64,000 nt of DNA from Hyalangium minutum (lineage in GTDB: Bacteria > Myxococcota > Myxococcia > Myxococcales > Myxococcaceae), in contig NZ_JMCB01000029.1 in assembly GCF_000737315.1 (NCBI RefSeq), positions 22,721 through 86,720 on the forward strand, in the 5' to 3' direction. The translations under genes and the position numbers were made by a program. The notes beneath the pieces are model-generated. The model saw nothing but the letters and a program-made list of their open reading frames with translations. It had not been told where the DNA came from and ran no database searches. This document shows, one piece after another, positions 5,779 to 40,342 of the stretch (its first letter is position 1; the number at the start of each line of letters is the position of its first letter).

Positions 5779-7032
5779 TTGGCAGTATACGCCGCGCCAC
5801 GACCATGCCCACCACGCCCGGACAGAAGAGCGGAAGGCCCCCCCGCCCCCAGCACGGCCGAGGCCGCCCCCATCCCCCAGGTCCAGCTCCTGCGCCGCGG
5901 CGTCGAGCGCTGGCAGGCTGGCCACCCGTGGATTTACCGCGCCGACCTCAACGGTGACCCTGGCCTCCCCGGCGGCGAGGTGGTGCGCGTCACCGACGGG
6001 CGCGGCTGGTTCATCGGCAAGGCCTTCTATTCGAAGCACTCGAAGATCTCCCTGCGCTGGCTCTCCTACGAGGACATCCCCGTCGACGTGGACTTCTTCC
6101 GCCAGCGCCTGGTCTCGGCCGATGCCCTGCGCCGCAAAGCCCTCCCCGGCGAGCGCACCTACCGCGTGGTGCACGGCGAGGCGGACCAGCTCCCCGGGCT
6201 CGTGGTGGACCGCTACGGGGACTACCTCAGCGTGCAGTTCCTCGTGCCCGCCATGGAGGCCCGCAAGGAGCTCATCACCGATCTGCTCACCGAGCTGTTC
6301 TCCCCCCGCGCTATCGTCAACCGCTCGGATGTAGGGGTGCGCGCCCTGGAGGGCCTGCAGCCCGAGAAGACCGTGCTGCGCGGCGAGCTGCCCGGCCCCG
6401 TCTCCTTCGACGAGGGCCTCGTGCGCATGCGCGCCGATCTGCTCGAGGGCCAGAAGACCGGCGCCTTCCTCGACCAGCGCGAGAACCACGTCATGGCCTC
6501 GCAGTACGCCTTCGGCGAGGCGCTGGACTGCTTCTCCTATGTGGGCGGCTTCGCGCTCCAGCTCGCCACCCGCGCCCAGCGCGTCACCGCCGTGGAGATC
6601 TCCGAGGCCGCCAGCGCCCAGCTGCGCGACAACGCCGCCGCCAACCGCCTCACCAACCTGGACGTCGTCGTCGCCAACGCCTTCGACTTCCTCCGCGACT
6701 CGGTGGACGAGGGCAAGCGCTACGACACCATCGTCCTGGATCCACCCTCGTTCGCGAAGAACAAGGATGCCGTGGCAGCCGCGCTTCGCGGGTACAAAGA
6801 GATCAACCTGCGCGCCATGCAGCTGCTCCGCCCCGGCGGCTACCTCATCTCCGCCAGCTGCACGTACCACGTGGATGAGCAGGCCTTCGAGGACATGTTG
6901 GCCTCCGCTGCGGCCGATGCGCGCCGGCGCGTGCAGATCATCGAGCGCCGGGGTGCGGGCAAGGATCACCCGGTACTCCTGAATTTGCGGGAGACGCGCT
7001 ACCTGAAGTGCTTCGTCCTGCGGGTGCTGTGA
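5779..7032 (+). CDS. rlmI: Class I SAM-dependent rRNA methyltransferase, RlmI/YccW type (PUA + MTase)
   Basis: GHPWIY, GEADQLPGLVVDRYG, GQKTGAFLDQRENH, LDCFSYVGGF, DTIVLDPPSF, DHPVLL..ETRYLK. Start is unclear (see finding on the C7 run). Confidence 0.85.
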   Translation: MAVYAAPRPCPPRPDRRAEGPPAPSTAEAAPIPQVQLLRRGVERWQAGHPWIYRADLNGDPGLPGGEVVRVTDGRGWFIGKAFYSKHSKISLRWLSYEDIPVDVDFFRQRLVSADALRRKALPGERTYRVVHGEADQLPGLVVDRYGDYLSVQFLVPAMEARKELITDLLTELFSPRAIVNRSDVGVRALEGLQPEKTVLRGELPGPVSFDEGLVRMRADLLEGQKTGAFLDQRENHVMASQYAFGEALDCFSYVGGFALQLATRAQRVTAVEISEAASAQLRDNAAANRLTNLDVVVANAFDFLRDSVDEGKRYDTIVLDPPSFAKNKDAVAAALRGYKEINLRAMQLLRPGGYLISASCTYHVDEQAFEDMLASAAADARRRVQIIERRGAGKDHPVLLNLRETRYLKCFVLRVL

Positions 7033-7569: not shown

Positions 7570-7910
7570 GCCGTCGTTCATGGAAGACGTGGGCTGCAGG
7601 GGCGTTGCTGGCGCTGCTGGCGGGGTGCGCCAGCGGAGGCTCGAACACAGTAGCTGCGGCCATCATCAACACCACCGTGGCGGTGGCTGCCTCGGGCGTG
7701 TCGCGCTCACAGGGCGGGTGCTTCTCAGCGTGTGCCCCGGGCACCACGTGCGATCCCAACACGGGCTACTGCGTCGCCCTGCCTTGCCGCGGCCGGTGCA
7801 AGGACCATGAGCAGTGCGTGGAGGACGGGTTCAAGAGCCAATGTGTCGCCCTGTCCCTGCCCGGACAGGTGACGGTGGAGCCGACCAAGGAAGCGAAGAC
7901 CGACCCGTGA
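7566..7910 (+). CDS. Small Cys-rich lipoprotein
   Basis: Lipobox LLAGC, then 8 further Cys in an EGF-like spacing; ATGA overlap with the upstream stop. Confidence 0.8.
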   Translation: MSRRSWKTWAAGALLALLAGCASGGSNTVAAAIINTTVAVAASGVSRSQGGCFSACAPGTTCDPNTGYCVALPCRGRCKDHEQCVEDGFKSQCVALSLPGQVTVEPTKEAKTDP

Positions 7911-9091
7911 CGCTTCGCTGGCTCGTTGCCCCTCAGGAGTTCAAGGGGACTCTCACCGCCTCCGAGGTGGCCGAGGCTCTCCAGGCCGGGCTCCAGGAAG
8001 CCGCTCCCGAAGTCCTCCTCGATGTCGCGCCGCTCGCGGATGGCGGGCCCGGTACCGTGGACGCGCTGCTCGCGGGAGGCGCTGGAGAGCAACGGGTCCT
8101 CACCGTGCAGGGCCCGCTTGGCGCTCCGGTCCAGGCAGCCTGGGCGCTGCTGGAGTCCGGACGGACGGCGATCATCGAGATGGCCGCGGCCTCGGGGCTG
8201 TCGCTGCTGCGCCCCGAGGAGCGGGATGCCCGGCGCGCGTCCACGTATGGCACGGGGGAGCTGATCCGCGCGGCGCTGGATGCGGGCTGCTCGCGGATCA
8301 TCGTCGGCATGGGTGGCAGCGCGACGAACGACGGCGGGGCCGGGGCGCTCACGGCGCTGGGCTACTGCTTTCTCGATGCGCAGGGCCAGCTGCTGCCTCC
8401 GGGTGGCGCCGCGCTCCGGCAGATGGCGCGCGTGGACATCACCCAGCGGCACCCCCGGCTCACGGAGGTGGAGCTGCTGGCGGCCACGGACGTGACGGCC
8501 CCGCTGCTGGGCCCCAATGGCGCCTCGCAGCTGTTCGGGCCGCAGAAGGGCGCGGATCCTCAGACGGTGGAGCAGCTGGAGGAGGCACTGGCCTGGTTCG
8601 CGCAGGGGCTCGCGCCCGAGTTCATCCGGGTGCCGGGCGCGGGAGCGGCCGGAGGGCTCGGGTACGGGCTGGCGGTGCTGGCGGGGGCGAACATCGCCTC
8701 CGGGTACCGGCTGGTCGCCCATGGGCTCCGGCTGGAGCGGCGAGTGGCGGTGGCGGACGTGGTGCTCACCGGCGAGGGGCGCTTCGATCGGCAGACCACC
8801 CTGGGCAAGGGGCCGGCCGCCCTGGCGCGCACGGCCAAGGAGCTGGGCAAGCCGGTGGTGCTCTTCGTGGGCTCGACCGTCCACGAGGAGGGGCTGGACA
8901 CCACGCTGTTCCAAGAGATCATCGAGCTGGGCAGTCCGCCGTTCGACAAGGAGGCCGCGGTGCGGGCGCTCCGGGAGGCCGCCGCGCGCTGGGCCTCCAC
9001 CGCCCGGCACATGAAGCCGCACGACGAACGGGATCGCGGCCACGACCGGGAAGCCGGGGACGAGCACCTGGGCTCTGGCGGTTCGATGTAG
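7907..9091 (+). CDS. glxK: Glycerate kinase (class I, GlxK/GarK family)
   Basis: PQEFKGTL, ADGGPGT, EMAAASGL, STYGTGELI, GSATNDGG, GAGAAGGLG, TGEGRFDRQT; GTGA overlap. Confidence 0.9.
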   Translation: MTLRWLVAPQEFKGTLTASEVAEALQAGLQEAAPEVLLDVAPLADGGPGTVDALLAGGAGEQRVLTVQGPLGAPVQAAWALLESGRTAIIEMAAASGLSLLRPEERDARRASTYGTGELIRAALDAGCSRIIVGMGGSATNDGGAGALTALGYCFLDAQGQLLPPGGAALRQMARVDITQRHPRLTEVELLAATDVTAPLLGPNGASQLFGPQKGADPQTVEQLEEALAWFAQGLAPEFIRVPGAGAAGGLGYGLAVLAGANIASGYRLVAHGLRLERRVAVADVVLTGEGRFDRQTTLGKGPAALARTAKELGKPVVLFVGSTVHEEGLDTTLFQEIIELGSPPFDKEAAVRALREAAARWASTARHMKPHDERDRGHDREAGDEHLGSGGSM

Positions 9092-35230: not shown

Positions 35231-36676
35231 CTAGCGCGCCTGGGGGAAGTGGCGGCGGCGCAGCTGGTCCACCAGTTCCTGGGTGGCGGGGGTATAGGCC
35301 ACCCGCCCCTCCTGGGACTCGGGCGCCTGCGCCCCAACGAACGAGGGCGCTTCGGCGGCGCTGTCCGTGAGCTGGAAGTAGCCCTCGGGCGGCTGCTCGC
35401 CCTCCTGGCCGATGAGCCCGATGGGCCCGGAGCCATGGCGCCGCCGGAAGAGGATGGGGGCGCCCGGCACGCTCTGCTTGCCCTCGGCGGCCTCGTTGCC
35501 GAACTTCATGGTCGGCGTGTGGCCCGTAAGGGACAGCTTGTAGATGGCCGCCACCCGGTCGCGCGTGAAGGGGCACTCCATGGTGCGCGCGACGATGTGG
35601 CCGCCGTAGCCGTAGAACTGCGCGGAGGGCTCCCAGCCCACCTGGCGGCGCAGCTCCTCGAACTCGCGGGTGGCGGCGGCGTCCAGGCCGTCCTCGAGGA
35701 TGTTCACGGGGCGCACGCCGAGGTCCCGCGCCTGGGTGACGGCGTAGAGGTACTGGAGCTTCTTGTTGCCCGAGTCGAAGCGGATGGAGTCCCCTCGGTT
35801 CGGCTCCTCGCGCATCAGCCGGTAGGCGGCGGGCAGGCCCGAGGCCAGCGTGTCATAGGTGTCCAGCAGGTAGCTGGAGCGCTGGGGCCGGCGCTCGCGC
35901 ATGGCGCGGAAGGCGGCCTCGTCCGAGCCGTAGCGCTGGATGTGCTCGTGGCCCATGGTGCCCACCGGGATCATCCCCAGCTTGCGAGCGCCCTCCACGT
36001 TGGAGGTGCGCGCCACGCCCGCCTCCTTGCAGGCGCGCAGGGCAAGCTCATGCTGCTCCAGGCAAGTGGCGGCGCGCAGGCCCACCTCGAAGATGCGGTT
36101 CGGATCCTCGACGATCTCCACCAGCTCGCGCACCTGGGCCAGCACGCGCTGGGAGTAGGCCTCGGGGTCGGCGCGCATGGGCACGGGCTTGACGCCCACG
36201 GCGTCCAGCGTCTCCAGCGCGATGCGCTTCTGCTCCTCGCAGGTGAGCACGGCGAGGGCTCGGGCCAGCGTGTCCCGATCCGCGAGCGCCTGGGTGGCCA
36301 CCTGGATGCGGAAGTTGAGCTGGATCAGCAGCGGCTCGATCCAGGAGACCAGGGCCGAGGGTCCGCAGAGCGAGAGCACGGGCTCCTTCGGGTAGAAGAG
36401 CGCGCCGCGAGGCAAGGCGTGGATGACGAGCCTTTCCTTGTTCTGGATGGCGGCCTTGAAGCCGACGCCCATCTCGTAGTCATTGCGCGAGAGGAACTCA
36501 TAGTCCTCGGGCTTGGGATCGGGCAGCAGGCCACGCACGAAGGCAGGGATGTCCAGAGGTACGATCTGGAGACCGCCCTTGCGGTGCGTGTAATAGAAGG
36601 TCTCCTTGCGAAGTGGCCACCCCGCCTCCGCCATGCTGAACTTGTAGCCGTCCGTCGCGAGCAGCGATGTCCCCAT
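35231..36676 (-). CDS. pncB: Nicotinate phosphoribosyltransferase
   Basis: LLATDGYKFSM, FEVGLRA, TSNV, VGTMGHE (phospho-His), LLDTYD, IRFDSG. Confidence 0.88.
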   Translation of the reverse strand: MGTSLLATDGYKFSMAEAGWPLRKETFYYTHRKGGLQIVPLDIPAFVRGLLPDPKPEDYEFLSRNDYEMGVGFKAAIQNKERLVIHALPRGALFYPKEPVLSLCGPSALVSWIEPLLIQLNFRIQVATQALADRDTLARALAVLTCEEQKRIALETLDAVGVKPVPMRADPEAYSQRVLAQVRELVEIVEDPNRIFEVGLRAATCLEQHELALRACKEAGVARTSNVEGARKLGMIPVGTMGHEHIQRYGSDEAAFRAMRERRPQRSSYLLDTYDTLASGLPAAYRLMREEPNRGDSIRFDSGNKKLQYLYAVTQARDLGVRPVNILEDGLDAAATREFEELRRQVGWEPSAQFYGYGGHIVARTMECPFTRDRVAAIYKLSLTGHTPTMKFGNEAAEGKQSVPGAPILFRRRHGSGPIGLIGQEGEQPPEGYFQLTDSAAEAPSFVGAQAPESQEGRVAYTPATQELVDQLRRRHFPQAR

Positions 36677-36780
36677 CCAGTCTCTCTGCCTCCTGAAGGA
36701 GAGCGTATCAGGGGTTCCTCTGGGTTGTTCGGGAGATCCACGAGATGCGAGGCGGTGTCGCTCCCTGATGGAGGAGCCCC

Positions 36781-37300
36781 TTGCATCGGAGGACGTGTCT
36801 CACTCCGGGAAGCATCCCGTGGGCCTGTATGCTTGTGCTGCTCACCCTCCTGCTCGCTGGGTGCTCGGGCACGCCGCCAGGCGTGCGCCTGGTCCGGCCC
36901 GCTCCCGATGCCACCGTGGCCACCGCCTGGGAGGCGCGCTCATGTTCGACACGCAGGGGCGCCCCATCGCCTCCGGGAGTGGAGGCTTCCGCCGCTACAT
37001 CGCCCGGCGGGAGACGGACGGCACCTGGACGGATCTGATCACCGGGGATGCGCTCGAGTCTTGCCTGAGCACCGGTGTCTCGAGCCAGATCATCACCCAG
37101 GCCCCGGATGGGATGACCTACGCCCTGTGTGGCGCCAACGGACAGCTGGTCCGGCGCGAGAGCAACGGGTGGACGGCCGCTGGGGGCTCCGCTGTCGGCT
37201 TCCTCCTCCCCGTTGAGCCTCATGCTCGTCCTGGACGGGCTGGGCCGTCCGGTGGCCCTGGCCACGTACCCGCTGACGAAGGAACACGAGGCCGTGACTC
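36781..37300 (+). pseudogene. Frameshifted, 3'-truncated lipoprotein remnant
   Basis: Lipobox LLAGC in one frame; continues (GALMFDTQGRP..GTWTDL) after a frameshift near 36930 and again (LVLDGLGRPVALA) after one near 37205; ends at the lectin gene. Confidence 0.6.
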
Positions 37301-37317
37301 ATTATCCGCACGGATGC

Positions 37318-37806
37318 TCAACGCCAGCGCTGGAAATTGCCGCCGTTGCACCCCAACGTATAAACGTCGCCGCTGGTATTGCTGTCCAGACAGTATCCGG
37401 TGGCCACGTTTCTCATTTCGTATCCGAAAGCCCCCTTGTAGGTCACGACCCACTGCTGGTAACTGCCACCATTGCAGGGCAAAGTGTAGACATTGCCGTT
37501 GTTATTACTGTCCAGACACCATCCGGTTGCTTGATTGCGAATCTGGTCCCCGAATGTGAGCGGAGTGTTCGTCCAGTTCTGATACGCCCCCCTGTTACAG
37601 CCCAGCGTGTAAACGTTCCCGTTGCTGTTACTGTCGAGACAGCGCAGCGTGGCAGTATTTACCCAGGGCAATGGTCCCCTTCTTATCTCCGATGCCACCT
37701 CCGCGAGGGGCTCGCCATTGCTCAGTTCGTCGCTCGGGGCAGCTGAACAGGCGGAGAGCGAGAGAATCCAACCCAGCAGCGAAATACCAGCGATCTTTCT
37801 GTTCAT
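37318..37806 (-). CDS. Ricin-B (beta-trefoil) lectin lipoprotein, actinohivin-like
   Basis: Lipobox LSAC; three repeats RN.ATG.CLDSN.NG.VYTL.CNGG.YQ.W. Confidence 0.9.
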   Translation of the reverse strand: [162 protein letters not shown]

Positions 37807-37866
37807 GACAACTCCATGTCCATGAAGGCCGCTCGCTGTAGCGCCAGAGGCCGCCCCGTGTGCAGG

Positions 37867-37924
37867 ACTGTTCGGAAATGTCGGGATTTCTCAGGCTCCA
37901 AAACCCCCGACATTTTCGAACAGT
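37867..37924. repeat. 19-bp inverted repeat with 20-nt spacer
   Basis: actgttcggaaatgtcggg ... cccgacattttcgaacagt, one mismatch, in the divergent intergenic region. Confidence 0.85.
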
Positions 37925-38080
37925 GGGCCAGCGGACCCGACCGGCCGGACCAATGCCCCCGCTGTACTCAGGGCCCTCCGCACCTACGGATCGGGTGCAC
38001 GAGAAACCTTGCTGACGCTCCCCTTATGATGCGCCGAGCTTCCTCCCGCCAATTGCCTGCCCTCGCCTGTCCAGGACTCC

Positions 38081-39241
38081 ATGCCCCCGGCCTCATCCCG
38101 CCGCCTGCTGTTCGCTCTCGCCCTCAGCCTCGGCGTGCATGCAGCGGTGTGGCTCGTGCTGGCGGCCCGCGGCCGGGAGTCCTCGGAGCAGCGCCCGGTC
38201 CCTCCTCCTACTCCGGGGATGCTCCAGTTCGTCGAGGTAGAGGTCTCGCCTCCCCCCAAGCCTCCGGAGCCTCCACCGCCTCCTCCCAAGCCGGAGCCCG
38301 CGCGTCCTCCTCGCGCCGCACCGAAGCCCCTTGCCGCGGTAACGCCTCCTGTTCCGCCTCCACCTGCGTCCGAGGCTCCCGCTCCTCCCGCGCCCGCCCC
38401 CGTGACGGATGCGCCCCGAGCCGATGCGCCCCTCTCAGCAGATACGCCTCGACTCGGAGGGCCGCGCCTCGCCCCTTCACTCTCGCTCACACCCGGCGGC
38501 GAGGTCGCCGTCTCGCCCTCTGCCACGGGAGTGCCCCAAGGACTCCCGGCCCAATCCGCGCAGCAGGTGGTGGACACGCTCACCCAGGAGACGCTCGGCA
38601 AGGGCAAGGTGCAGCGCGGTCTGGTGCACCCCTACTTCACCCAACTCGGAAAGAGCCTGCTCAAATCGTGGGACGCCGAGCGCGCCGTCACCTCGCACGG
38701 CCTCAAGGGCTTCCTGGAGCAGGCCCAGGAGAACAGCAAGGCGTGGAACTCCATCTGGAGAGACCGGGCCGCGGCCTACGGAGCCTCGGGCTCGCCGCTG
38801 GAGGCGGACCCCGCGCTGAAGCCGGACCGCAGGCCCCCGAACGCGCTCTCCAATCCCAACCTGGAGGCGCGTCGCACCATGCGCCAGCAGATGCGCGAGG
38901 AGTTCCAGTCCACCCGCCGCGCCGTCATCCGCGTGGTGCAGGACGCGCAGGGGCGGCTCTTGGAGGTGACGCTCGTGTCTCCCAGCAACAATGCTCAGGT
39001 GGACAAGGAGGCCATGAAGGACGTGCGCACCGCCGCCGAGCAGCTCCCGCCCCCGCCTCCTGAGGCGCTCGCGGGCAAGCAGACGCTCACAAGCCTCTGG
39101 CAGTTCGAGCTGATCATCTCCATCACCCCACCGGTGCCCACGCTCAGCTTCGAGTTCGACGAGGCGCTGAAGTTCGTGGACATGCGGCTGCCGCTGGACC
39201 GGCGCATCTACAAGCGTGTGCGGCTGCTCTCGGTCCAGTGA
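38081..39241 (+). CDS. TonB-like protein (TM anchor, Pro-rich linker, TonB C-terminal-like domain)
   Basis: N-terminal ALALSLGVHAAV TM with His; long Pro-rich tract; C-terminal VIRVVQDAQGRLLEV.LVSPSNNAQVDKEA. Confidence 0.65.
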   Translation: MPPASSRRLLFALALSLGVHAAVWLVLAARGRESSEQRPVPPPTPGMLQFVEVEVSPPPKPPEPPPPPPKPEPARPPRAAPKPLAAVTPPVPPPPASEAPAPPAPAPVTDAPRADAPLSADTPRLGGPRLAPSLSLTPGGEVAVSPSATGVPQGLPAQSAQQVVDTLTQETLGKGKVQRGLVHPYFTQLGKSLLKSWDAERAVTSHGLKGFLEQAQENSKAWNSIWRDRAAAYGASGSPLEADPALKPDRRPPNALSNPNLEARRTMRQQMREEFQSTRRAVIRVVQDAQGRLLEVTLVSPSNNAQVDKEAMKDVRTAAEQLPPPPPEALAGKQTLTSLWQFELIISITPPVPTLSFEFDEALKFVDMRLPLDRRIYKRVRLLSVQ

Positions 39242-39252
39242 GGTGGGCCAAG

Positions 39253-39815
39253 AAGCCCCGCGTTCCAGGCTTCAGGAACGCAGGGCCGCGACTCACGAAT
39301 GAGACGTCAGGACGGTTCCGGCGACTTCGCTCCGTCGCTCACGCCGGGCAGCTGGGCGGTGAGCGCCTCGGCCAGCAGCAGCATCTGCTCCAGGGGGATG
39401 CCTTGGATGTCCACCACGGCCTTGCCCTTCTGGTTGCGAAGCGCGAGCTTCACCAGCGTGCCCTTGCCCTTGGGGAAGCGCTGCGCCACCGCCTCGGAGT
39501 ACTGCTCGGCCAGCGCCACCTTCTCCGGCTACAGCGGCTTGCTGGAGGTGGGCCGATGCTTGCGCTGCAGAGCCCGGCGCATCTGGTCCACGCTGCACGC
39601 TCCGAACGGCTGCTCGGTGACATTCCCGTTCTCATCCGGCACCTCGATAGGCGTGGGGCCCGGCTCCTCGTGGTTCAGCTCCAGCCCGGCCGCCTCCGCG
39701 TACATCAGCAGCACGGAGAGGCACGTGACGCCGAAGCGCCGCGCCACCGGCTCGCTGAAGTTCTCCGCCACCGTCCCGTACACCTTCAGCGTCGGCAGGG
39801 ACAGGTCCGCCAGGT
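39253..39815. repeat. Dispersed repeat of about 560 bp; second copy at 63439-64000
   Basis: Near-identical sequence by eye, from aagccccgcgt.ccaggcttcaggaacgcaggg to gacaggtccgccaggt, same orientation. Confidence 0.93.
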
Positions 39816-39850
39816 GCTGGCTGAAGTACTCCGCCACGTCCTTGTAGCCC
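39307..39850 (-). pseudogene. 5'-truncated, amber-interrupted copy of a multicopy myxobacterial hypothetical gene
   Basis: GYKDVAEYFSQHL...GIPLEQ matches the ORF at 63492; TAG at 39529-39531 replaces CCC; no recognisable N-terminus. Confidence 0.85.
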
Positions 39851-39977
39851 GAAAATAGTCCCCCTCCCTGCGGCGGTGGGGGTTCTCTAACCTGTTGAAT
39901 GAACAGGCGAGCACGGGGAGCTCCTGGGTGGAACGGACCTGGACGGGGTGCGTCTGTTCGAGGGATTGCCGCACGAC

Positions 39978-40250
39978 CGCCGCCCCGAGTGCACTCCCAG
40001 ACGGGTTCCTCCCAACCGTCACGAGGCTGCCAGCGCTCAAGCTCCCAGAGTCTCTGCGCTCGCCAGAGATTCCGTATCACCTGGGTTGGCTGAACTACGG
40101 GTCAGCCGCTACCGCAGAAGCCATCGGGTTCCCTGACCCTGCCCGCGACTTGGAACTGCTCTCGCGGGCGCGGCGCACGTCGTCGGGCGGATGGGTCGTG
40201 CAGCTCACCGATGCGCCGCTCGATCTCGACAACCCCGCGCACCTGGACCC
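39978..40250 (+). pseudogene. Deleted remnant of a toxin/immunity pair like 53525-55214
   Basis: RRPECTPRR (matches the toxin) joined to LPALKLP..SPEIPYHLGWLNY..GFPDPARD.ELLSRARRT.SGGWVVQLTDAPLDLDNPAHLD (matches the immunity C-terminus). Confidence 0.8.
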
Positions 40251-40342
40251 GAGGCGGCGGGAATCAACCCCGCCGCTTGGAACTTCTGCTGAGAGCGCTC
40301 CGACTCGGTCGATCAAGGAGCCCAGGCCCGGAACGGGTGGAT

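Follow-up and report, generated by a model that had tools for sequence, protein, structure and literature searches.

Introduction

The closest known system to the gene described here is actinohivin (UniProt Q9KWN0; PDB 3A07, 4DEN, 4END, 4G1R, 4P6A), a lectin of Longispora albida. To our knowledge, no other protein of its subfamily has been characterised, and actinohivin itself has been studied only as an inhibitor of HIV entry. In the complex with mannobiose the pocket residues are Asp91, Tyr99, Leu101, Asn104 and Tyr108 together with their equivalents, and the protein has a single disulfide, C51-C65, while the equivalent residues in the other lobes are in contact (PMC3498932). The actinohivin-type site has its aromatic residue on a helical turn before the last strand and not on strand 3, from which the stacking aromatic of the classical CBM13 domains, with xylan, lactose and galactose as ligands, is derived (PMC11039641).

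Among the papers searched, none links actinohivin with myxobacteria beyond incidental mention. A myxobacterial lectin of another kind, the hemagglutinin MBHA of Myxococcus xanthus, reportedly binds high-mannose glycans, as Koharudin et al. are said to have described in 2012. The Oscillatoria agardhii agglutinin-homologue family, to which MBHA belongs, has been studied as a source of antiviral lectins. It is named in PMC8166773 and PMC5577609.

Here, an actinohivin-like gene of Hyalangium minutum is analysed. It lies in a stretch of 64,000 nucleotides, which is called the window throughout. The favoured interpretation, to which a probability of about 0.65 is assigned, is that the gene product is a lectin of the actinohivin type with a lipid anchor and with alpha-1,2-mannosyl glycans as its ligands.

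Results

The lectin gene

The gene and the elements in its 5' region are located as follows:

37318..37806, minus strand: lectin gene, intact, 162 codons plus TGA, with an ATG start (list of open reading frames)
37812..37815, minus strand: GGAG Shine-Dalgarno sequence, 5 nt before the lectin ATG (read from the sequence)
37867..37924, no strand assigned: 19-bp inverted repeat (hairpin), 61-118 nt upstream of the lectin ATG

A sequence-only reading of this DNA had placed an open reading frame at exactly these coordinates, and it was verified that it lies on the minus strand and encodes 162 amino acids. A Pfam profile search yielded a match to Ricin_B_lectin (PF00652; 5.1e-15, 56 bits). The three 23-residue repeats that had been quoted are indeed present, at residues 56-78, 97-119 and 139-161, but the description "near-perfect" was too strong; compared with one another, the repeat cores are 70-78% identical on the protein level and 70-75% on the DNA level.

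An orthologue is present at one other locus, L078. Between the two genes the dN/dS ratio amounts to 0.20, and for the domain alone to 0.11; the lectin gene is under purifying selection. The sole upstream stretch shared with L078 is ATGGAGT-GTCATG, which spans the Shine-Dalgarno sequence. A scan for promoters and terminators at the lectin gene found neither, including no promoter-like site. The arms of the hairpin are 95% complementary, its RNA fold has a calculated energy of -37.5 kcal/mol (z-score -4.2), and it is unique in the window and absent from L078. In Rfam, the hairpin matched only a miRNA family with a score below the threshold, which was taken as noise.

The domain is an actinohivin-type trefoil

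The domain consists of three lobes, each with one predicted sugar pocket and one pair of cysteines:

37546..37659, minus strand: trefoil lobe 1, residues 50-87, pocket D58/Y66/L68/N71/Y75, Cys56-Cys70
37420..37545, minus strand: trefoil lobe 2, residues 88-129, pocket D99/Y107/L109/N112/Y116, Cys97-Cys111
37321..37419, minus strand: trefoil lobe 3, residues 130-162, pocket D141/Y149/L151/N154/F158, Cys139-Cys153

Comparison with proteins of known structure gave a uniform result. In a phmmer search of the PDB, actinohivin matched residues 50-161 with an E-value of 6.5e-32, and the next match, CEL-III, reached only 1.6e-3. BLASTP against actinohivin revealed 65 identities in 113 positions (58%, 2e-36). 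When the AlphaFold2 model, which has mean pLDDT values of 97-99 in all 10-residue blocks of the trefoil domain, was compared with the PDB using Foldseek, all matches were trefoils and the best four were actinohivin chains (target TM-score 0.89-0.91, rmsd 1.6-2.0 A, identity 55-56%). Thus, sequence search and structure alignment both put actinohivin first. Because the closest solved relative is actinohivin, a kinship with galactose-type ricin-B domains, which the sequence-only reading had named as the contrary outcome, was not what was found. Each lobe is closed by a QxW motif (Q76-x-W78, Q117-x-W119, Q159-x-W161), and actinohivin is placed within the tree that was built from the homologues. 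Judged from these features, the window protein is an actinohivin-subtype CBM13/ricin-B beta-trefoil.

Sugar pockets and ligand specificity

The pockets of lobes 1, 2 and 3 align to actinohivin residues D15/Y23/L25/N28/Y32, D53/Y61/L63/N66/Y70 and D91/Y99/L101/N104/Y108, respectively. The actinohivin sequence and pocket residues on which the sequence-only reading had relied, from recall, agree with the published ones (PMC3498932). Its claim that all three pockets are intact also held, since 14 of the 15 residues are identical to those of actinohivin and the only difference is a Tyr to Phe replacement in lobe 3. In actinohivin the Tyr at this position touches C5 and C6 of the sugar only hydrophobically (PMC3498932), and Phe is the majority state of the family at this wedge position (85 of 120 homologues). 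The pocket residues are conserved in 98-119 of the 120 homologues. In the AlphaFold2 model, DSSP assigned helix to residues 74-76, 115-117 and 157-159, which would put each wedge aromatic on a short turn before the last strand.

These features make it fairly probable that the lectin is specific for alpha-1,2-mannobiose or high-mannose glycans. It is conceivable, though rather doubtful, that the same fold and anchoring serve another ligand with equatorial O3 and O4, for example a glucose-type sugar, a bacterial exopolysaccharide or a peptidoglycan-linked glycan, in which case "high-mannose lectin" would be the wrong label. The one scaffold of CBM13/ricin-B trefoils serves for ligands as different as xylan, lactose, galactose, arabinose and mannose (PMC11039641), and the Foldseek matches include 1knl, 1knm, 3vsf and 1vcl. 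Furthermore, actinohivin is the only family member that has ever been assayed, and the flanking "open space" residues of lobe 3 are N143/S145/D147, compared with the Asn-rich N93/N95/N97 of actinohivin. At 58% identity, loop differences could shift the specificity from that of actinohivin. However, 14 of the 15 first-shell residues are those of actinohivin, the fifteenth is a conservative replacement at a purely hydrophobic contact, and the similarity to non-mannose CBM13 domains is weaker by about 30 orders of magnitude in E-value. A mannose-type specificity is therefore preferred.

It had also been claimed that each repeat has a Cys pair. This was verified, and each pair is homologous to Cys51-Cys65 of actinohivin. 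Three Cys pairs are the norm among the homologues, and actinohivin is the exception. Three disulfides would be the ancestral state of the family. Each lobe of the window protein is thus probably locked by one disulfide.

Lipoprotein signal and tether

In front of the trefoil domain the protein has two further segments:

37747..37806, minus strand: lipoprotein signal peptide, residues 1-20, with MNRK, a hydrophobic core and the lipobox LSAC with Cys20
37660..37746, minus strand: tether, residues 21-49 ([29 protein letters not shown]), delimited from the AlphaFold2 model and the spacing in homologues

The positively charged MNRK is followed by a 14-residue hydrophobic run ([14 protein letters not shown]), which ends with L17-S18-A19-C20. 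The lipobox proposed in the sequence-only reading is thus canonical, and LSAC matches the consensus L-[A/S/T]-[G/A]-C (PMC3222651). A Cys at the equivalent position, mostly residue 20, is found in 61 of the 120 homologues. All named carriers are Sorangium, and homologues that are named as Actinomycetota or Chloroflexia are devoid of the lipobox Cys.

About half of the closest 120 members bear a lipobox, and the other half have plain signal peptides. In addition, two paralogues of Cystobacter fuscus have lost the lipid Cys and have Gly instead; they are presumably soluble, and because of them anchoring is not essential to the family. Both points would fit a cut by signal peptidase I and release of the window protein as a soluble lectin like actinohivin. 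Against this, LSAC, which closes a hydrophobic core of 14 residues, agrees with the lipobox consensus, and the Cys has the same place in 61 homologues, with variable residues behind it. A soluble product is thus very unlikely, and there is high confidence that the window protein is an actinohivin-family lipoprotein.

In M. xanthus, Lys at position +2 directs lipoproteins to the inner membrane and Ala at +7 to the matrix, and a FibA A27D mutant stays in the outer membrane (PMC3222651). None of the 62 lipobox-bearing sequences (61 homologues and the window protein) has Lys at +2 or Ala at +7; position +7 is Asp or Glu in 46 of the 62. The window protein has Ser at +2 and Asp at +7, and these residues would be compatible with sorting to the outer membrane. 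The tether of about 29 residues is predicted to be disordered, with AlphaFold2 pLDDT values below 50 at residues 21-24 and 28-38 and mean values of 46-49 up to residue 40. In lipobox-bearing homologues, the first domain Cys follows the lipid Cys at a distance of 28-44 residues.

In the best-studied proteobacteria, outer-membrane lipoproteins are periplasmic by default. The lectin might accordingly face the periplasm and act on the cell's own envelope or an exported polysaccharide, for example by holding or chaperoning a mannose-containing polymer, with no contact to prey or other outside surfaces. No recognisable surface-export signal and no partner genes indicating an external role were found, which would agree with this orientation. 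However, actinobacterial and Chloroflexia homologues carry ordinary secretion signal peptides and are plainly secreted to the outside, the long, disordered and acidic tether, whose length is kept at 28-44 residues, suits display off the membrane, and there is no linkage to polysaccharide-export genes (none among the neighbouring genes scanned with Pfam). Taken together, a purely periplasmic role is somewhat unlikely, and the chances that the lectin is exposed on the cell surface are about even.

Insertion of the gene between conserved neighbours

The lectin gene is contained in a segment that is bordered by two genes used as synteny anchors:

35231..36676, minus strand: conserved 481-aa gene, left synteny anchor (77 Myxococcota loci, 48-88% identity)
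36715..38070, no strand assigned: lineage-specific inserted segment of about 1.35 kb with the lectin gene (synteny comparison)
36743..37303, plus strand: segment of 560 bp that is specific to this strain, downstream of the lectin gene and with a decayed lipoprotein-like reading frame
38081..39241, plus strand: TonB C-terminal-domain protein, right synteny anchor (Pfam TonB_2, 4.7e-8)

The homology with the loci Hyalangium versicolor L036, L005 and L033 ends at 36714 and resumes at about 38070-38093. At these loci the distance from the 481-aa gene to the TonB-like gene is only 55-160 bp, in contrast to 1.4 kb here. The TonB-like gene, which is divergent from the lectin gene, directly adjoins the 481-aa gene in relatives, and according to tblastn coordinates the anchors are likewise close in Archangium and at some Myxococcus loci. 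The segment of about 1.35 kb is missing between the anchors in about 30 related genomes, and a lectin gene within 10 kb was found at none of 77 syntenic loci. Only L078 has the lectin at the same spot, and there the neighbouring gene has 95% nucleotide identity. It can be concluded that the lectin gene entered a Hyalangium-like lineage by insertion at a variable intergenic spot.

Searches for the vehicle of the insertion revealed no marks of a mobile element. The window contains no tRNA, no integrase or transposase families were present among the open reading frames scanned with Pfam within about 9 kb, and a repeat search found no convincing flanking repeats of the inserted segment. Searching phages with the lectin gave no match, and searching plasmids gave only matches of at most 40% identity. 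An 11-nt direct repeat with 10 of 11 positions matching was observed at 37811-37821 and 38076-38086; it could be due to chance.

No conserved neighbours of the lectin gene were found in any genome examined, and thus the genomic context yields no clue to the function of the lectin. For the 481-aa neighbour a motif-based assignment as nicotinate phosphoribosyltransferase was dropped, as Pfam gave no match. In the 560-bp segment the high-GC3 frame changes twice, and the segment is not homologous to L078, where an intact 151-aa gene sits; a tblastx comparison with all loci under study yielded low-complexity noise only, and a Pfam search with the central frame yielded nothing.

Base composition and relatedness

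The sequence-only reading had noted a GC content lower than that of the flanks, and the lectin gene indeed has 55.8% GC, compared with 66.7-70.5% in the neighbouring genes and 67.3% in the window. Its GC3 of 0.687 is below the lowest value of 49 gene-like open reading frames of the window (0.692; median 0.83). About 60% of the GC drop comes from the amino-acid composition (GC1 0.47) and the remainder from synonymous sites, and an equal dip was observed at all four other myxobacterial loci examined. For both reasons, the dip on its own is weak evidence of recent transfer. The proposed horizontal acquisition is supported by the lineage-specific insertion between genes that are adjacent in relatives. 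The dS value against the L078 orthologue is 0.215; it is similar in magnitude to the value for the neighbouring gene (0.136) and fits a residence of the lectin gene since before the two strains split.

The family is large; at E<=1e-30 it comprises 65 clusters, and when the limit is relaxed to E<=1e-10 their number rises to about 800. In a neighbour-joining tree without support values, the window protein groups with the lipobox-bearing homologues P0001-P0003 and P0006 in a large lipoprotein clade that includes Sorangium, and the proteins closest to it likewise bear a lipobox, those of Sorangium and of metagenomic origin among them. Due to the lack of support values, only a tentative direction of transfer can be given.

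It was also considered that the gene might have come recently and directly from an actinomycete instead of residing in a myxobacterial gene pool. The deepest diversity of the family is in Sec-type proteins, without a lipobox, of Actinomycetota and Chloroflexia, Frankia proteins of at most 74% identity have the pre-domain motif SALSGGPWTW in common with the lipoprotein clade, and the depressed GC3 would suit a foreign origin. However, the window protein falls within the lipobox-bearing clade, and possible donors among the actinomycetes match the GC richness of the recipient and would therefore leave the low GC unexplained. The dip at the four other myxobacterial loci and the similarity of the two dS values also argue against such an import, which is considered very improbable; a direct actinomycete donor is not indicated.

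Discussion

A model for the lectin

In the model favoured here, that of a lipid-anchored lectin for alpha-1,2-mannosyl glycans, the precursor would be exported by Sec, Cys20 of the LSAC motif would be lipidated, and signal peptidase II would cleave. With Ser instead of Lys at +2 and Asp instead of Ala at +7, the M. xanthus rule would send the product to the outer membrane, where the flexible acidic tether of about 29 residues would carry the 113-residue trefoil, and one disulfide per lobe would have been formed in the periplasm. In each pocket the Asp would accept the equatorial O3 and O4 hydroxyls of mannose, Asn and Tyr would contribute hydrogen bonds, and Leu together with Tyr or Phe on the short helical turn would wedge against the sugar. 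This arrangement is the one by which actinohivin holds Man-alpha(1-2)-Man (PMC3498932). Three equivalent pockets on one face would provide avidity for clustered alpha-1,2-mannosyl termini.

The likeliest use of such a protein would be the adhesion of the cell, of vesicles or of the matrix to mannosylated material, and candidate targets are fungal mannoproteins, actinobacterial lipomannan or glycoproteins, and the cell's own polysaccharide. That the lectin serves adhesion to prey is a tentative and rather unlikely proposal. It is tempting to speculate further that the whole actinohivin clade with a lipobox (60 or more sequences, for the most part myxobacterial) is a surface or vesicle adhesin that grips alpha-1,2-mannosylated neighbours, but this is improbable at present. 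The neighbours would be yeasts, filamentous fungi, and actinobacteria with lipomannan or O-mannosyl proteins. If true, this would be the first lectin-based prey-recognition device in predatory myxobacteria. By analogy with actinohivin, the lectin may also have antiviral activity, and three disulfides could then make it a sturdier scaffold for antiviral lectins than actinohivin.

Several consequences follow at different levels. The actinohivin subfamily is broad, and, as predicted from the sequences, about half of its closest 120 members are of the lipid-anchored type, from diderm soil bacteria. This leads to a testable ecological hypothesis, namely that predatory bacteria recognise alpha-1,2-mannosyl glycans at the cell surface, and it provides natural variants on which the engineering of lectins could draw.

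Comparison with known systems

Several known proteins resemble the lectin in fold or in ligand and yet differ from it clearly. The fold of MBHA, with beta-barrel repeats of about 66 residues, is unrelated, and the high-mannose epitope that it recognises is another one; MBHA is not a lipoprotein and has no sequence relationship to the window protein. The A and C subunits of cytolethal distending toxin (PF03498) likewise have a ricin-type trefoil, and the lectin scored 29 bits against a cut-off of 22. This match lies beneath the stronger Ricin_B_lectin match, and a Pfam scan that covered part of the neighbouring genes revealed no nuclease-subunit or other toxin families, so that the assignment as a toxin subunit was rejected. 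Lectins of the Rv1419 (sMTL-13) family (NCBIfam NF052302) are also ricin-type trefoils, and membership was discarded at 23 bits against a cut-off of 200.

The classical CBM13/ricin-B domains, such as the CBM13 of Streptomyces lividans xylanase 10A (PDB 1KNL/1KNM) and CEL-III (1VCL), share PF00652, the (QxW)3 trefoil, the strand-2 Asp of each site and, commonly, one disulfide per lobe. However, the sequence similarity is marginal (CEL-III 1.6e-3, compared with 6.5e-32 for actinohivin), and in the model the aromatic of the window protein is on the helical turn before strand 4, as in actinohivin. Moreover, classical CBM13 domains are mostly appended to enzymes or toxins, while the window protein stands alone.

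With actinohivin the window protein has in common the three-lobed beta-trefoil of about 113 residues with LD...VYTL..N..(Y/F)QxW in every lobe, the pocket of Asp, Tyr, Leu, Asn and an aromatic residue, the Cys pair at the site of the lobe-2 disulfide, and the standalone architecture without an enzyme. Actinohivin is soluble, is secreted by a Gram-positive actinomycete and has one disulfide, whereas in the window protein a lipobox and a tether of about 29 residues precede the domain, all three lobes have a Cys pair, pocket 3 contains a Phe and the inter-lobe linkers are 4-5 residues longer. Domain, fold and likely chemistry were already known, and no established concept is changed. Taken together, the window protein is a variant of a known lectin type, with a predicted lipid anchor and probably three disulfides.

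Kinship of the lectin to actinohivin

The candidate lectin is encoded by a single gene copy in the window, with the following features:

37318-37806, minus strand: lectin ORF, 162 codons, ATG start, TGA stop
37812-37815, minus strand: GGAG, 5 nt 5' of the lectin ATG
Residues 56-78, 97-119 and 139-161 of the product: 23-residue repeat cores

The product consists of an N-terminus extending to residue 20, a 29-residue acidic, Pro/Ser-rich stretch and three modules. A sequence-only reading had called the repeats near-perfect. The threefold repeat is unmistakable, but the adjective was generous, as the cores share pairwise 70-78% identity at the protein and 70-75% at the DNA level.

Residues 50-161 matched the Pfam family Ricin_B_lectin (5.1e-15). 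A sequence search against all PDB entries yielded strong matches only to two actinohivin entries (6.5e-32 and 7.8e-32), with CEL-III as the next sequence (1.6e-3), and thus the closest homologue in the PDB is actinohivin, as had been proposed, and not a galactose-binding ricin-B domain. A BLASTP comparison with mature actinohivin, the sequence of which was confirmed in the literature (PMC11669158), gave 65/113 identities (58%, E=2e-36). An AlphaFold2 model was built from an input alignment of 101 sequences. Beyond about residue 50, as far as the C-terminus, the mean pLDDT of 10-residue blocks was 97-99; values below 50 were obtained at residues 21-24 and 28-38. In a Foldseek comparison of the model with the PDB the best four hits were actinohivin chains (target TM-score 0.89-0.91, rmsd 1.6-2.0 Å, 55-56% identity), followed by designed symmetric trefoils and classical CBM13 modules.

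Sugar pockets

In the crystallographic complex of actinohivin and alpha(1-2)mannobiose, Asp91 binds the second mannose through O3 and O4, further hydrogen bonds come from Asn104 and Tyr99, Leu101 stops the sugar from moving, and Tyr108 forms a hydrophobic wedge between both mannoses; the equivalent residues of the remaining two lobes do likewise (PMC3498932). The aligned pockets of the lectin are:

Lobe 1: D58, Y66, L68, N71, Y75
Lobe 2: D99, Y107, L109, N112, Y116
Lobe 3: D141, Y149, L151, N154, F158

The sole change is Tyr to Phe at the wedge of lobe 3, which the first reading had also noted. Phe at the wedge position is the commoner residue among 120 homologues in lobe 2 (71/120) and lobe 3 (85/120). 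In the model the wedge aromatic lies on a short helical turn preceding the last strand, a geometry that marks actinohivin off from other CBM13 modules (PMC11039641). The secondary Asn/Asp patch of actinohivin has its counterparts in N60/N62/N64, N101/N103/N105 and N143/S145/D147. With conserved pockets and wedge geometry, the same chemistry as that of actinohivin, i.e., trivalent recognition of alpha-1,2-linked mannose termini, is the default expectation from homology. That this scaffold has come to bind a different sugar, at pockets that differ from those of actinohivin in one residue, is considered unlikely.

Lipoprotein features

The N-terminal sequence agrees with the lipobox consensus L-[A/S/T]-[G/A]-C, and the lipobox had been noted from the sequence before. 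Of the 120 closest homologues, 61 share such a Cys, which is almost invariably residue 20; those of the 61 that carry an organism name are from Sorangium. Ordinary signal peptides are present in homologues named Frankia, Streptomyces, Actinokineospora, Kineococcus, Krasilnikovia and Chloroflexia. That the lectin, with its lipobox, is likewise a soluble, non-lipidated product is very improbable.

In Myxococcus xanthus lipoproteins Lys at position +2 goes with an inner-membrane location, export to the matrix requires Ala at +7, and replacement of the +7 Ala of FibA by Asp led to retention in the outer membrane (PMC3222651). In the lectin, +2 is Ser and +7 is Asp. When it is counted together with the 61 homologues, none of the 62 sequences with a lipobox has Lys at +2 or Ala at +7, and 46 have Asp or Glu at +7. 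From these residues an outer-membrane lipoprotein with a flexible tether is predicted, which may face outward; a role facing the periplasm is rather doubtful.

The chromosome of Cystobacter fuscus Cbf 10 encodes two actinohivin-like paralogues 1.3 kb apart (6001-6477 and 7824-8309 of the fetched locus L080), both of which have Gly instead of the lipobox Cys (LSLSAG). A metagenomic relative, P0047, retains LSLSAC. They adjoin a lanthipeptide-synthetase-like gene (RamC_N/Pkinase/LANC_like).

The lectin gene lies in a variable locus

The genes on both sides of the lectin gene served as synteny anchors:

35231-36676, minus strand: gene for a 481-aa protein, used as synteny probe
38081-39241, plus strand: gene with a TonB C-terminal domain

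With the probe, 77 syntenic loci were fetched from species-representative genomes; the best matches were from Hyalangium (85-88% identity), which marks the window as that of a Hyalangium-like myxobacterium. The 481-aa protein matches no Pfam family at E<=1e-3, although its homologues (48-88% identity) are present in at least 77 genomes of Myxococcota. By tblastn coordinates, its gene is near and divergent from the TonB-like gene in Hyalangium versicolor, in Archangium, in several MAGs of Myxococcaceae and in some Myxococcus loci. A lectin homologue within 10 kb is absent from all 77 loci. Nucleotide homology with relatives ends at 36714 and restarts at about 38070-38093, and the matching gap in three other loci (L036, L005, L033) is only 55-160 bp, and the lectin gene thus lies in an insertion of about 1.35 kb. 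Relatives carry different cargo in this gap, namely an enoyl-CoA hydratase-like gene, a DUF6310 lipoprotein and a DUF5953 gene (L002, 6740-10000) or a chemoreceptor-like (MCP) gene (L004, 7955-10000), and therefore it is a variable spot and appears to be a local hot spot for gene gain. The corresponding spot in L003 (3278-5230) also differs in cargo. Synteny with relatives breaks also directly past the TonB-like gene. At 40024-40260 (plus strand) lies a DUF5953 C-terminal fragment (profile positions 142-220 of 233, E=6e-42), probably the remnant of a truncated gene of which the rest is absent; it begins inside the opposite-strand ORF 39529-40080, sharing about 57 bp with the 5' end of that ORF.

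The metagenomic contig L078, whose 481-aa gene has 95% nucleotide identity, contains the lectin gene at the same position (92.6% nucleotide, 92% protein identity). The common ancestor of both strains probably had the gene already, and the gene is under purifying selection (dN/dS 0.20 for the gene, 0.11 for the domain; dS 0.215 versus 0.136 for the neighbouring gene). Homology between the two extends only from 11 nt 5' of the ATG to 14 nt 3' of the stop codon (37304-37817 versus 729-1242 in L078), and the 165-bp 5' and 560-700 bp 3' regions are unrelated. The coding sequence is thus cassette-like, a 92.6% identical core between unrelated flanks and outer genes that are 89-95% identical.

The 560 bp between the lectin stop codon and the 481-aa gene (36743-37303, plus strand) correspond in position to an unrelated stretch of 700 bp in L078, which holds an intact 151-aa gene without a Pfam match. 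The window segment opens with a lipoprotein-like start at 36781, MHRRTCLTPGSIPWACMLVLLTLLLAGCSG..., and its high-GC3 frame changes twice, near 36900 and near 37120, and is stop-free until it enters the lectin gene in antisense; it looks like a decayed or truncated gene. On the other side, 61-118 nt 5' of the lectin start, a 19-bp inverted repeat (37867-37924, ACTGTTCGGAAATGTCGGG / CCCGACATTTTCGAACAGT, 20-nt loop) has no second copy in the window and is missing from L078. As RNA it would fold with -37.5 kcal/mol (z-score -4.2), and a function as operator or as 5'-UTR hairpin is conceivable.

The window contains no tRNA gene, and the ORFs scanned with Pfam within about 9 kb of the lectin gene include no integrase or transposase. 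Convincing flanking repeats were not found, nor were close copies on plasmids or phages. Its window neighbours, a catalase-family protein, a molybdopterin enzyme, LysR regulators, an MFS transporter and an aldo-keto reductase, gave no pathway hint.

Composition and origin

The lower GC content observed at first sight was borne out, with 55.8% for the lectin gene versus 66.7-70.5% for neighbouring genes and 67.3% for the window. GC1/GC2/GC3 are 0.47/0.52/0.69 compared with about 0.70/0.50/0.78-0.94 in the neighbours, and therefore the Asn/Thr/Tyr/Ser-rich protein accounts for roughly three fifths of the dip and synonymous sites for the other two fifths. At 0.687, GC3 is below the minimum (0.692) of 49 gene-like ORFs in the window (median 0.83). 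A low GC content (58-61%, flanks 68-72%) recurs in the lectin genes at all four other myxobacterial loci that were examined (L078, L079, C. fuscus, Sorangium), and the dip therefore appears to be a family trait rather than a mark of fresh import.

All sequences of a library of 1.84 billion proteins were read, and at thresholds of E<=1e-30, E<=1e-10 and E<=1e-3 the family comprised 65, 798 and 2,061 clusters, respectively, multidomain proteins among them. Five long relatives (P0121, P0122, P0130, P0141, P0204; 470-790 aa) contain two to eight actinohivin-like stretches or one C-terminal module; the module therefore also serves as an appended domain. Gene neighbourhoods differ entirely from one genome to the next, and in most cases the gene is a solitary one with long intergenic regions on either side.

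In a midpoint-rooted neighbour-joining tree of the domain, which carries no support values, actinohivin is found among Sec-type sequences near the base. The window protein groups with the library homologues P0001-P0003 and P0006 in a large lipobox clade that holds the Sorangium proteins, and several Sec-type groups, Frankia included, are nested inside this clade. The tree suggests that Actinomycetota and Myxococcota exchanged the gene long ago and that it then spread among myxobacteria, with the direction of transfer not secure. A direct actinomycete origin of the Hyalangium gene, which groups with lipobox proteins, is highly unlikely.

Proposed role and comparison with actinohivin

The best-supported picture is that of a lipid-anchored, tethered, trivalent lectin, through which the cell envelope would bind clustered alpha-1,2-mannosyl termini with avidity. 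From general glycobiology, plausible targets in soil would be mannoproteins of fungi, lipomannan and O-mannosyl proteins of actinobacteria, or the cell's own polysaccharide. In the papers searched only incidental links between actinohivin and myxobacteria were found, and the databases label the relatives "RICIN domain-containing protein". The result is sound and moderately interesting, and would not surprise a lectin specialist; it gives a concrete starting point for finding out what the actinohivin family does in nature.

The domain itself is of a known type, and what varies is the lipobox with its tether and the presence of a Cys pair in each of the three lobes. The single disulfide of actinohivin, C51-C65, is in lobe 2, and at the equivalent sites Leu13/Ala27 (lobe 1) and Val89/Ala103 (lobe 3) are in mutual contact (PMC3498932). 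In contrast, the lectin has, as the sequence-only reading had stated, a Cys pair in every lobe (56/70, 97/111 and 139/153). These six positions are Cys in 111-120 of the 120 homologues, so that three pairs are the family norm and actinohivin is the outlier.
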